From: Schizochytrium sp. TIO01
Lineage: Eukaryota; Protista; Bigyra: Labyrinthulomycetes
Length of the DNA stretch: 64,000 bases
NCBI GenBank assembly: GCA_004764695.1
Contig: SMSO01000034.1
Location: 4,774,001-4,838,000 of the forward strand
Direction of reading: 5' to 3'
This document shows, piece after piece, positions 49,990 through 55,033 of this stretch. The stretch's first letter is position 1; each line of letters opens with the position of its first letter. A model generated the notes under the pieces. It saw nothing but the letters and a program-made list of their open reading frames with translations. It was not told the origin of the DNA and ran no database searches. The position numbers were made by a program, and so were the translations under genes.

Positions 49990-52900
49990 ATGTCAGACAA
50001 CCCAGATGTTGTCACTGCCCTTGAAAAGCTTCAGAATGGCGCTACAACATTGAGGTAAGTTAACACGCTTGCTTGCTTGCTTGCTTGCTTGCTTGCTTGC
50101 TTGCTTGCTTGCTTGCTTGCTTGCTTGCTTGCTTGCTTGCTTGCTTGCTTGCTTGCTTGCTTGCTTGCTTGCTTGCTTGCTTGCTTGCTTGCTTGCTTGC
50201 TTGCTTGGGTAGTGGTTTGTTTTGTTGGATCGCAAGTTCATGCGATTGCTTGTTTGGTTGATTTATTGAGTATACATCCATCGAACAAAGAGCAAAATGA
50301 CAACACAACAAAGATAAATGGTGAAAGCCAACCTAGATCACTCACGTCCATGCATGCATGCGTGCATCTATTGTAATATGTAACGTGTAATGTATAGCTT
50401 GCCATCATTCAATCGAATCGACAGTCTTTCCTACAACCGCATCGGCGACGAGGGCGCCAAGGCAGTGGGTGCGGCGCTGAAAGAGAACCGGTCGCTGACA
50501 TCACTCAAGTAAGTTGTCTATGCAACACCGCAGCTCGTGGACTTGTTTGTACATGATGGTTGGTTTGTTGTTTGGTGGGTGGGTCGGTGTTGTTTTGCAA
50601 GTCTATGCAATCTCTTGTTTGTTTGATGGATGGACACATTGTCTGTTTGAGTGAGTATACATCCATCAAACAAAGAGCAAAATGACAACACAAGAAAGTT
50701 GAAATCCTGAAAGCCATCCTCGATCACTCACGACCAGGCACGCATGCGTGCATCTAATGCCATCTAATGTAATGCTTGCCATCATTCAATCAAATCGACA
50801 GTCTTGATGAGAACGATATCGGCTCAGAGGGTGCCAAGGCAGTGGCTGCGGCGCTGAAAGAGAACCGGTCGCTGACATCACTCAAGTAAGTTGTCTACGC
50901 AACACCGCAGCTCGTGGACTTGTTTGTACATGATGCTTGGTTTGTCGTTTGGTGGGTGGGTCGGTGTTGTTTTGCAAGTTTATGCAATCGCTTGTTTGTT
51001 TGTTCGTTTAGTTGGTTGGTTCGATGGATAGATGGATAAGTTGTTTGTTTGAGTGAGTACACATCCATCGAACAAATAGCAAAAAGACAAAACGACAAAG
51101 ATGAAATCCTGAAAGCCAACCTAGATCACTCACGTTCATGCATGCATGCGTGCATCTATTGTAATATGTAACGTGTAATGTATTGCTTGCCATCATCCAA
51201 TCAAATCGACAGTCTTTCTGGCAACCAGATCGGCTCAGAGGGCGCCAAGGCAGTGGCTTGCGGCGCTGAAAGAGAACCGGTCGCTGACATCACTCAAGTA
51301 AGTTGTCTACGCAACACCGCAGCTCGTGGACTTGTTTGTACATGATGCTTGGTTTGTTGTTTGGTGGGTGGGTCGGTGTTGTTTTGCAAGTTTATGCAAT
51401 CGCTTGTTTGTTTGATGGATGGGTGAGTTGTCTGTTTGAGTGAGTATACATCCATCGAACAAAGAGCAAAATGACAACACAACAAAGATGAAATCCTGAT
51501 AGCCAACCTAGATCACTCACGTCCATGCATGTATCCAATGTAATGCATTGCAATGTCATGTATTGCTTGCCATCATTCAATCAAATCAACAGTCTTCAAT
51601 GCAACAAATTCGGCTACGAGGGCGCCAAGGCAGTGGCTGCGGCGCTGAAAGAGAACCGGTCGCTGACATCACTCAAGTAAGTTGTCTACGCAACATCGCA
51701 GATCGTGGACTTGTTTGTACATGATGTCTGCTTCGTTGGTTTGTTGTTTTGGTCGGTGTTGACTTGCAAGTTTATGCAATCGCTTGTTTGTTTGATGGAT
51801 GGATGGGTTGTCTGTTTGAGTGAGTATACATCCATCGAACAACGAGCAAAATGACAACACAACAAAGATAAATGCTGAAAGCCAACCTAGATCACTCACG
51901 TCCATGCATGCATGCGTGCACTTATTGTAATATGTAACGTGTAATGTATTGCTTGCCATCATTCAATCAAATCGACAGTCTTTCGGGCAACCTTATCGGC
52001 TCAGAGGCCGCCAAGGTAGTGGTTGCGGCGCTGAAAGAGAACCGGTCGCTGACATCACTCAAGTAAGTTGTCTACCCAACAACGCAGCTCATGGACTTGT
52101 TTGTACATGATGTCTGCTTCGTTGGTTTGTTGTTTTGGTCGGTGTTGATTTGCAAGTTTATGCAATCGCTTGTTTGTTAGATGGATGGATAAATTGTCTG
52201 TTTGAGTGAGTATACATCCATCGAACAAAGAGCAAAATGACAACACAACAAAGATAAATCCCTGAAAACCAACCTAGATTACTCACGTCCATGCATGCAT
52301 GCGTGCACTTATTGTAATATGTAACGTGTAATGTATTGCTTGCCATCATTCAATCAAATCGACAGTCTTGGAAGCAACCGGATCAGCTCAGAGGGCGCCA
52401 AGGCAGTGGCTGCGGCGCTGAAAGAGAACCGGTCGCTGACATCACTATCGTAAGTTGTCTACGCAACACCGCAGCTCGTGAACTTGTTTGTACATGATGC
52501 TTGGTTTGTTGTTTGGTGGGTGGGTTGGTGTTGTATTGCAAGTTTATGCAATCGCTTGTTTGTTTGATGGATGGATGGGTTGTCTGTTTGAGTGAGTATA
52601 CATCCATCGAACAAAGAGCAAAATGACAACACAACAAAGAACGAAATGCTGAAAGCCAACCTAGATCACTCACGTCCATGCATGCATGCATCCACTTATT
52701 GTAATATGTAACGTGTAATGTATTGCTTGCCATCATTCAATCAAATCAACAGTCTTCAATGGAACTATATCGGCTACGAGGGCGCCAAGGCAGTGGCTGC
52801 GGCGCTGAAAGAGAACCGGTCCCTGACATCACTTGTGTAAGTTGTCTACGCAACACCGCAGCTCGTGGACTTGTTTGTACATGATGCTTGGTTTGTTGTT

Positions 52901-55033
52901 TGGTGGGTGGGTCGGTGTTGTTTTGCAAGTTTATGCAATCGCTTGTTTGTTTGTTCGTTTAGTTGGTTGTTCGATGGATAGATGGATAAGTTGTTTGTTT
53001 GAGTGAGCACACATCCATCGAACAAAGAGCAAAATAACAACATATCCTGAAAGCCAACCTAGATCACTCACGTTCATGCATGCATGCGTACATCTATTGT
53101 AATATGTAACGTGTAATGTATTGGTTGCCCTCATTCAATTAAATCGACAGTCTTTTTAGAAACCAGATCGGCGACGAGGGCGCCAAGGCAGTGGGTGCGG
53201 CGCTGAAAAAGAACCGGTCGCTGACATCACTTGAGTAAGTTGTCTACGCAACATCGCAGCACGTGGACTTGTTTGTACATGATGCTTGGTTTATTGTTTG
53301 GTGGGTGGGTCGGTGTTGTTTTGGCAAGTTTATGCAATCGCTTGTTTGTTTGTTTGTTTGTTTGTTTGTTTGTTTGTTTGATAGATGGATGAATGGTTGC
53401 GTTGTCTGTTTGAGTGTGTATACATTCATCGAACAAAGAGCAAAATGACAACACAACAAAGATTAATGCTGAAAGCCAACCTAGATCACTCACGTCCATG
53501 CATGCATGCGTGCATCTATTGTAATATGTAACGTGTAATGTATTGCTTGCCATCATTCAATCAAATCGGCAGTCTTTCCTACAACGATATCGGCGACGAG
53601 GGCGCCAAGGCAGTGGCTGCGGCGCTGAAAGAGAACCGGTCGCTCACATCACTATTGTAAGTTGTCTACGCAACACCGCAGCTCGTGGACCTGTTTGTAC
53701 ATGATGCTTGGTTTATTGTTTGGTGGGTGGGTCGGTGTTGTTTTGCAAGTTTATGCAATCGCTTGTTTGTTTGATGGATGGATGGGTTGTCTGTTTGAGT
53801 GAGTATACATCCATCGAACAAAGAGCAAAATGACAACACAACAAAGAACGAAATCCTGAAAGCCAACCTAGATCACTCACGTCCATGCATGCATGCATGC
53901 ACTTATTGTAATATGTAACGTGTAATGTATTGCTTGCCATCATTCAATCAAATCGACAGTCTTGAACGCAACCGGATCGGCGACGAGGGCGCCAAGGCAG
54001 TGGCTGCGGCGCTGAAAGAGAACCGGTCGCTGACATCACTTGTGTAAGTTGTCTACGCAACACCGCAGCTCGTGGACTTGTTTGTACATGATGCTTGCTT
54101 CGTTGGTGTGTTATTTTGGTCAGTGTTGTTTTGCAAGTTTATGCAATTGGTTGTTTGATTGATGGATAGATACGTTGTCTGTTTGACTGAGTATCCATCC
54201 ATCGAACGTACTGCAAAATGACAACACAACAATGATGAAATCCTGTCTGCCAACCTAAATCACTCACGTCCATACATGCATGCGTGCATCTATTGCAATG
54301 TAATGTATTGCTTGCCATCATTCAATCAAATCGACAGTCTTTCGGGCAACAATATCGGCTCAGAGGGCTCCAAGGCAGTGGGTGCGGCGCTGAAAGAGAA
54401 CCGGTCGCTCACATCACTTGAGTAAGTTATCTTAGTAACACCCTAGTTTATGGACTCGTTTGTACACGAGGCTTGGTTGGTTGGTTGGTTCGTTGCTTCG
54501 TGGGTTGTCTAGTGTGTTATTTTGCCTATGTCTTTCTTCGCGCCATTGCAAGTTTGTTGTGGAATTGTTTGTTTGGTTGATTGTGGATCGAACAAAGAGC
54601 ACGATAGTATCAGCGACGAAATGAAACTGTACTGGCAATACTGTGGGTTCCTTTTAATGACGTGAACTTGTAAACTAACGAACGGAGTTGATGTCATTTG
54701 GATTTTACTGATACTAGAATGGCCCGGGGGGTGAACGAAATGCGCGAGGAGCTCGAATTGAATAAGCAAATTTGTTCTGCAAAGACAAGAAGGACAAGTC
54801 TTATACAGATATCTCGTGAGCTTCGTTGTATACATGTTGTAAACGATGCACTTTCTCTGCCGTTTTCAGTGCAGCATAGTATTCTTACACAAGCTTGGCC
54901 TGCGAACAGGTCTGGTATGCCGAGTTCAAAAGAGGACTATATTGCTGCGCAGAAAGTAGAGCTTGAATTGCTGGAAGCTGCAAACGTTGCCTTTCATGCA
55001 ACATTGGGCTGTCTAGGCCCTTACATATTGTAA
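49990..55033 (+). CDS. Modular LRR protein: leader exon + 11 single-LRR exons + C-terminal exon (possible SOCS/F-box-like tail), ~434 aa; one exon has a +1 base
   Basis: Exons 49990-50054 (MSDNPDVVTALEKLQNGATTL), 50425-50508, 50802-50885, 51213-51297 (85 nt), 51593-51676, 51979-52062, 52366-52449, 52753-52836, 53151-53234, 53573-53656, 53960-54043, 54338-54421 and 54718-55033. Every LRR exon is flanked by CAG| and |GTAAGT in phase 2 and encodes xLxxNxIGxEGAKAVxAALKENRSLTSL, an RNase-inhibitor/NLR-type 28-aa LRR. Confidence 0.88.
50067..50206. repeat. (GCTT)35 microsatellite in intron 1 of the LRR gene
   Basis: A perfect GCTT array of 140 nt. Confidence 0.97.
50270..54430 (+). repeat. Exon-intron tandem repeat family A (377-422 bp unit x11)
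   Basis: Exon-start spacings are 377, 411, 380, 386, 387, 387, 398, 422, 387 and 378 bp. The introns share GTAAGTTGTCTACGCAACACCGCAGCTCGTGGACTTGTTTGTACATGATG … TATTGCTTGCCATCATTCAATCAAATCGACAG. Confidence 0.97.

Follow-up and report, generated by a model that had tools for sequence, protein, structure and literature searches.

We analysed a 64,000-nt stretch of the Schizochytrium sp. TIO01 genome (contig SMSO01000034.1, positions 4,774,001 to 4,838,000 of the forward strand; hereafter the window), in which a tandem array of leucine-rich repeat (LRR) exons lies within the ribosomal DNA (rDNA). Tandem Repeats Finder places the array at 50267-54489, with a period of 387 bp and 10.8 copies. Based on Rfam, it sits between a 5S rRNA gene upstream on the minus strand (49399-49517; RF00001, 96.5 bits) and the 18S-5.8S-28S rRNA operon downstream on the plus strand (58773-64000, with the 18S gene at 58773-60560). 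The 5S gene is divergent from the LRR gene and lies only 472 bp from its ATG. The operon has the same orientation as the LRR gene and starts 3.7 kb downstream of its tail exon. A first-pass annotation, made from the letters alone, had placed this repeat next to the rDNA and read it as one-LRR-per-exon cassettes with hypervariable ligand-facing codons, encoding a diversifying repertoire of intracellular receptors. Our analysis confirms the rDNA setting and the cassette structure, and the interpretation as a whole is partly supported.

The gene begins with a 65-nt head exon (49990-50054; all its parts are on the plus strand), recognised by sequence reading and by alignment of 12 array heads. It is an ATG-initiated run of 21 codons plus two bases (AG) that encodes MSDNPDVVTALEKLQNGATTL, ends in phase 2 and provides the beginning of the first LRR strand. 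Intron 1 (50055-50424) contains a perfect (GCTT)35 microsatellite (50067-50207), and a GCTT or GGTC repeat occupies the equivalent place in 12 out of 12 aligned heads. The eleven LRR exons, located by script, are at 50425-50508 (LRR exon 1, encoding S|LSYNRIGDEGAKAVGAALKENRSLTSL), 50802-50885, 51213-51297, 51593-51676, 51979-52062, 52366-52449, 52753-52836, 53151-53234, 53573-53656, 53960-54043 and 54338-54421 (LRR exon 11, the final repeat); exons 2, 4 and 7 were scored with Pfam as well. Ten of these exons are 84 nt long and exon 3 is 85 nt, with one extra T (GGCTTGCGG vs GGCTGCGG). CAG precedes and GTAAGT follows each of the eleven, and the unit spacings are 377-422 bp. The last intron (54422-54717, 296 nt, GTAAGT...TAG) matches an intron that is removed from a paralogue's transcript, P0004, described below. 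It is followed by a 316-nt tail exon (54718-55033), an open reading frame (ORF) that supplies the rest of the split codon and runs for 104 residues to a TAA.

Translated from the second base, an LRR exon reads L-x-x-N-x-I-G-x-E-G-A-K-A-V-A-A-A-L-K-E-N-R-S-L-T-S-L, and its last two bases form a further variable codon with the invariant first T of the next exon (NN|T). All introns are phase 2, so units can be gained, lost or skipped in frame. The number, spacing and exon lengths of the units agree between the first-pass annotation and the script, and all eleven patterns of x residues that had been listed, including the residue split over the junction, were reproduced exactly.

Pfam and phmmer were used to score single exons. 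LRR exon 1 passes the PF13516 (LRR_6) threshold, at 24.3 bits vs a gathering score of 23.4, and three other exons reach 16.9-18.3 bits over 27 residues each. Against the PDB, single exons retrieve ribonuclease-inhibitor (RI)-like LRR chains with E values from 5e-14 (LRR exon 1) to 1e-5, including ribonuclease inhibitor itself (1dfj), NOD2 (5irl) and NLRX1 (3un9). Based on these matches, we conclude that the exons are 28-residue RI-type LRRs, one each. The RI-type (RNI-like) repeat is a 28-29-residue unit of the form LxxLxLxxNxIGdxGaxxLaxaLxxNxsL, detected by a family hidden Markov model, and the array exons conform to it. Direct reading of the head exon, the repeats and the tail revealed no hydrophobic stretch resembling a signal peptide or a transmembrane segment, in agreement with the first-pass annotation.

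When a two-unit probe was compared with the organism's own 64-Mb genome, at least 234 matches were obtained, mostly near contig ends or at orientation flips or end-to-end junctions. The modal unit is 385 bp in 15 other arrays, and the distance from the tail exon to a 28S landmark, about 9.1 kb, is constant across five rDNA modules. Raw copy counts for the family are slightly inflated because the assembly contains redundant end pieces. Six small contigs (C27, C4, C29, C14, C23 and C10) have scores and exon series equal to those of the ends of larger contigs; for example, C27:1134-4900 equals C13:110829-114595.

An exon census of 30 loci and the window gave 16 arrays with 152 non-redundant exons. 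Exactly 84 nt were found in 151 of the 152, exon 3 of the window being the sole exon of changed length, whereas 65 out of 138 introns depart from the modal 301 nt. Acceptors are AG in 152/152, and donors are GTAAGT in 149, GTGAGT in two and GCAAGT in one. Not a single in-frame stop occurs among the 152 exons, compared with 51 expected from the column frequencies of the variable codons, or 28 when the dimorphic codon 8 is left out. TAN codons at the variable positions are TAY in 46 out of 46 cases (P of about 1e-14). Only the LRR frame is open, with stops in 83/151 and 151/151 of the 84-nt exons in the other two frames. The ATG of the head exon is kept in 12/12 arrays where it is visible. An open phase-2 head frame was scored in ten of them, one of which is 56 nt long through an in-frame 9-nt deletion, and the remaining two have a GTAGGT donor, which lies outside the script's scoring. 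The genome contains about 73 copies of the tail, with 55-90% amino-acid identity to a transcript product, and the frame is uninterrupted in 68. The numbers of exons detected per array include 10, 11, 15 and 18.

These figures go far beyond chance, and the exons are thus under coding constraint. We conclude, with a probability of roughly 80% for the explanation as a whole, that in this Aurantiochytrium limacinum-type genome one LRR gene built of 385-bp repeats is present in every subtelomeric rDNA module and that the family has about 70-100 members. The gene plan comprises a 21-codon ATG exon, about 7 to 18 or more LRR exons of 84 nt and a tail exon encoding 104 residues, probably helical. At the level of the family, there is good support for reading the array as coding, with one LRR per exon and hypervariable codons at the surface.

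Per-site nucleotide diversity (pi) was computed over 138 aligned units. The mean is 0.043 in introns and about 0.03 in the exon framework, rising to 0.4-0.72 at exon nucleotides 5-10, 14-16, 23-25 and 82-84, a localised excess of 10- to 20-fold. These nucleotides make up codons 2, 3, 5 and 8 and the split codon, which correspond to x5, x7, x8, x10 and x13 of L-T-S-L-x-L-x-x-N-x-I-G-x. Between them, the codons for L, N, I and G match the introns in uniformity. The near-invariant framework and the confinement of hypervariability to the x positions of LxxLxLxxNxIGx, both noted from the window in the first-pass annotation, therefore hold over the aligned units. Each variable site uses 7-16 amino acids and is rich in S, G, Y, W, R, D, N, Q and E, and 138 distinct five-residue signatures are found among 151 exons. 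The variable codons are nearly unlinked, save for the adjacent codons 2 and 3.

Introns diverge to the same degree within arrays (0.038) and between chromosome ends (0.044), and units with less than 0.4% intron difference still differ at 51% of their variable nucleotides. A syntenic block of four units is shared with the chromosome end on contig C18. Within it, 11/60 variable, 4/276 framework and 66/1473 intron nucleotides differ (Fisher P = 4e-5), and the 11 variable differences amount to four whole-triplet swaps to alleles that are common elsewhere. Neutral sites, in introns and framework, are homogenised across the genome, and in each repeat diversity has reached saturation at five codons, which have been re-assorted almost freely.

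The tail has three related clusters among 1.84 billion representatives, all of them MMETSP transcriptome or JGI records, and on these sequences its domain appears to be lineage-specific. No Pfam family, ESM Atlas lead or Foldseek match was obtained for it, and an AlphaFold2 model predicts three helices with weak scores (pLDDT 68.8, pTM 0.32). A SOCS-box or F-box reading of the tail was rejected, as the BC-box spacing misfits by eye, with Leu at C-2 and not at C-4. In the MMETSP transcript P0004 (Transcript_5424), an LRR exon of the last type is joined to the tail exactly at the predicted GA|A junction, where a GC-AG intron of 257 nt lies in the corresponding genomic copy (L031). Over its C-terminal 80 residues, the product of the MMETSP transcript shares 100% identity with one copy in the genome, which supports A. 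limacinum or a strain very near to it as the source. The P0004 junction leads us to conclude that the LRR family is transcribed and that at least its last intron is removed. A sister family with a homologous tail (39% identity) has five non-tandem one-LRR exons, at L033 (G000:C31:5690076-5693414) and about 18 other sites. Its MMETSP transcripts P0002 and P0005 are fully spliced, P0002 across the five one-LRR exons (ag|...|gtgagt) and into the homologous tail.

Arrays of this kind have been described under another name. In a telomere-to-telomere assembly of A. limacinum, nearly all chromosome ends carry a 5S gene transcribed away from the telomere and an 18S-28S operon transcribed towards it (bioRxiv 10.1101/2023.06.15.545109). 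LORE-TEARS of Group 0, with about nine tandem units of about 385 bp each, are located between the 18S gene closest to the telomere and the nearest 5S gene (Collier et al., bioRxiv 10.1101/2023.06.15.545109; Curr Biol 2023). They were published as spacers without database similarity, with G-quadruplexes in 32% of Group 0 elements (bioRxiv 10.1101/2023.06.15.545109). With its period of 387 bp, 10.8 copies, 5S gene (-) upstream and 18S gene (+) downstream, the window array fits Group 0, matched by description and not by consensus sequence; the link, suggested in the first-pass annotation, is correct. The difference is that each unit here holds a constrained 84-nt LRR exon where a spacer was published. 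LRRs are not mentioned in that preprint, which is the sole mention of LORE-TEARS in the literature searched. A second tandem array, of 417 bp and 3 to 4 copies, lies directly downstream of the 28S gene and resembles LORE-TEARS Group 1; it was seen at L037:1609-2830 (G000:C13), with an equivalent just beyond the window at G000:C33:4839151-4840731. It was ruled out as a further LRR array, as none of its six frames contains an RI-type LRR motif. Thus not every spacer class is an exon array.

Around the LRR gene, a conserved upstream block with the 5' leader occupies 49840-49989 on the plus strand in the alignment of the 12 array heads. Within it, a 70-nt block (49870-49935, about 60-120 nt before the ATG) is more conserved across the 12 arrays than the coding head exon and includes GGTTCGAAACC, which is similar to a B box of RNA polymerase (Pol) III. 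It may be a promoter or a boundary element. A tRNA or tRNA-derived element, suggested by GGTTCGAAACC, was ruled out, with ARAGORN and Rfam finding no tRNA and no Rfam family in the block. On the other side of the 5S gene is a divergent neighbour gene (43197-48137, minus strand) whose 907-residue open exon (43197-45920) has a protein-kinase-like region and Cys-rich RBR-like motifs. Further upstream in this gene, at about 46400-48000 on the minus strand, are short LRR-like exons such as IGPEGAKAVAKSLHK and NGIDNESAKAAAKALERCKNLQTL, so that an LRR gene lies on either side of the 5S gene. About 10 kb upstream of the 5S gene, at 40027-40098, the window contains a tRNA gene (Rfam, 71.2 bits). It also contains a 329-bp tandem repeat at 23147-24042 (2.7 copies, 97% matches) that is unrelated to the LRR array.

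To account for uniform flanks beside saturated codons, we propose that unequal exchange and frequent, ordinary gene conversion, acting inside single arrays as well as from one chromosome end to a non-homologous one, homogenise the neutral sites and shift the variable codons around as small patches. Because the flanks are identical, a conversion tract alters only those variable codons that it covers; the effect looks like cassette swapping and destroys linkage. Diversifying selection would then keep the variable codons different. Selection on a binding surface is the simplest reading because conversion would otherwise erase the variable codons, barring a biased mutational input. In RI-type LRRs, the concave sheet and the strand-to-helix loops hold the x positions of xLxLxxNx, and it is there that ribonuclease inhibitor and NLRs contact their ligands. 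By analogy, the variable codons of the array would fall on the strand and the strand-to-helix loop, the usual RI-type ligand face. The outcome may be a large repertoire of cytosolic binding surfaces, that is, of recognition proteins, and we infer a possible receptor or immune role for the family.

Several results weigh against this reading, in whole or in part. The extra T in exon 3 of the window copy is a +1 frameshift, and the shifted frame stays open until a TAG at the start of exon 8, near 53157. At the variable codons, pN is 0.57 and pS 0.48, a ratio of 1.19 with both terms saturated, which is no proof of positive selection. For this reason, the case for selection rests on localised diversity and preservation of the frame, not on dN/dS. 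In the tail, dN/dS is 0.91 in the one pair measured, despite the kept frame. Nucleotide 82, the third position in the Leu codon that precedes the split one (for example, 50506, 50883 and 51674 in the window), is fully synonymous and yet has a pi of 0.67. It varies as much as nucleotides 83-84 and is tightly linked to them, the main triplets being CAA, TGA and ATC, and hitch-hiking on old codon alleles fits this better than amino-acid selection alone. The placement of the variable codons on the ligand face is taken from general knowledge of LRRs and not from a model of the array protein.

The remaining points against it concern splicing. P0004 carries MYCLPSFNQIDS, the translated 3' end of an array intron, and so keeps the 3' end of the intron before the last LRR exon. 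Three other MMETSP ORFs start at the tail exon, as would be the case if splicing had left the last intron in place. No transcript or protein joining at least two Group 0 LRR exons was present in the collections searched, which gave only tail ORFs or nothing. This is a weak negative because short-read assemblers cannot resolve near-identical repeated exons. Metagenome scans for the spliced-junction pattern and for the framework gave no match, in a collection without any form of the exon, and are hence uninformative. Full-length splicing of the Group 0 LRR genes is thus a prediction. Two of the checks named in the first-pass annotation gave mixed results. Among the predicted splice junctions, the one between the last LRR exon and the tail is used and a multi-LRR product is missing; in the site-wise comparison, diversity is localised to the x codons and pN/pS is saturated and hardly exceeds one.

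The frameshift can be either an assembly error or the mark of a real pseudogene. That the window copy is a pseudogene member of an otherwise functional family is a possibility of some weight, towards which we lean slightly less than away, and it is compatible with the main explanation. The 85-nt exon 3 and the stop met by its shifted frame speak for it. On the other side, a single extra T adjoining another T is a typical long-read assembly error, the rest of the copy is intact (ATG, ten 84-nt exons, splice sites and tail ORF), and a length change of that sort is seen in only one of 152 exons.

Another explanation accepts that the genes are coding and attributes the variable codons to a mutational process, either site-directed diversification or micro-conversion from diverged paralogues combined with relaxed constraint on the surface. 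It would account for the whole-triplet swaps between near-identical units, the hypervariable synonymous nucleotide 82 with its linkage to nucleotides 83-84, the pN/pS near 1 and third positions in the variable codons that are position-specific (for example, TAT or TAC), and the sister LRR-exon families are possible donors. Ordinary conversion tracts between units with identical flanks, however, also mimic triplet swaps. In the absence of selection, the variable codons should be evened out by the very conversion that keeps the flanks uniform (pi 0.04), and stop codons are avoided completely. Moreover, neither a diversifying enzyme nor a template element came to light in the window. We regard this explanation as improbable.

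Finally, it is very improbable that the array serves as non-coding spacer of the rDNA or as a repeat for the maintenance of chromosome ends, with a dead exon relic amplified in it: the published designation as spacers with G-quadruplexes, the location in the usual place of rDNA intergenic repeats, the missing multi-exon transcript and the neighbouring LRR-free repeat class downstream of the 28S gene agree with it, but dead exons would gather stops and indels as the introns do, and instead stops are absent and length is kept, a single frame, that of the LRR, is open, codons for the conserved L, N, I and G alternate with saturated ones, the head-exon ATG and phase and the tail ORF are retained in diverged copies, and at least one junction is spliced in a transcript. 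The frame statistics in particular weigh strongly against it.

If the preferred reading of a coding, diversifying LRR family is correct, the 'universal subtelomeric spacers' of Aurantiochytrium are genes and not anonymous DNA, and in every rDNA module a Pol II gene stands between those transcribed by Pol III and by Pol I. New are the interpretation of a published LORE-TEARS spacer as coding, the subtelomeric setting linked to rDNA, with a gene so placed in every module, and the extreme contrast of clonal flanks and saturated codons. The array offers an unusually clean natural case of concerted evolution and diversification a few nucleotides apart, in which conversion tract lengths and selection are therefore directly measurable. 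A culturable and transformable stramenopile with persistent mirusviruses would also gain a candidate variable recognition repertoire. It is a long shot, though a conceivable extension, that the roughly 100 rDNA-linked LRR genes form a contingency-type recognition system. In such a system, mitotic ectopic conversion or a directed process would re-assort the surface codons and subtelomeric or nucleolar chromatin would restrict expression, so that clonal lineages would differ in repertoire and have an adaptive-like defence, for example against the persistent Aurantiochytrium mirusviruses.

Several known systems share parts of this design. Plasmodium var and Trypanosoma VSG genes form families at chromosome ends in which ectopic recombination and conversion re-assort variable patches, and in lamprey VLRs, whose LRRs are not of the RI type, LRR modules are the variable binding unit. 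By analogy, the family described here resembles these systems as a large chromosome-end family with re-assorted patches and LRR binding modules. It differs from them in that there is no evidence of mutually exclusive expression or somatic assembly and signal peptides are absent.

The one-LRR-per-exon design itself is already known, from brown-algal ROCO LRR exons and from NOD/NLRC exons. In vertebrate NOD/NLRC and ribonuclease inhibitor genes, each exon encodes one 28-residue RI-type LRR, with the exon border fixed in the beta-strand and in-frame skipping possible (Hoss et al. 2019, PMC6642158). The array has this exon design in common with them, and its single exons match NOD2, NLRX1 and RI chains. 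Unlike NOD/NLRC genes, the array gene is without NACHT/NB-ARC, CARD or PYD domains; no NACHT/NB-ARC domain lies N-terminal to the LRRs, and the 21-codon ATG exon that forms the head leads straight into the LRR exons. Nor do the vertebrate genes form tandem families near telomeres whose introns are homogenised.

In mechanism, the nearest analogue is the LRR-ROCO family of brown algae, and the parallel with Ectocarpus drawn in the first-pass annotation was apt (PMC3341825). In that family, each 72-nt exon encodes one LRR, introns are in phase 2, exons are shuffled and alternatively spliced, and the residues of the concave face are diversified (PMC3341825, PMC11378527); both the argument from concave-face x positions and a candidate immune-receptor role were proposed for it (Zambounis et al. 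2012, PMC3341825; Teng et al. 2024, PMC11378527). Common to both are a stramenopile host, one LRR per exon, phase-2 introns, variable repeat number and diversified x positions. The hallmarks of exon shuffling (one LRR per exon, symmetric intron phase and variable repeat number) are all found in the arrays. ROCO genes have 72-nt exons, LRRs of a 24-residue type and a fusion to a ROC-COR GTPase, whereas the array has 84-nt exons of the RI type and an orphan, probably helical tail. No ROC-COR GTPase is encoded downstream of the LRRs, the sole exon after the array being the 104-residue tail without Pfam or fold match, and the array genes thus stand outside the ROCO family. In contrast to ROCO genes, the introns here are near-clonal, the arrays are strictly tandem and each gene lies within a subtelomeric rDNA module. 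With these genes, the one-LRR-per-exon design reaches a third setting, after brown algae and vertebrate NLRs.

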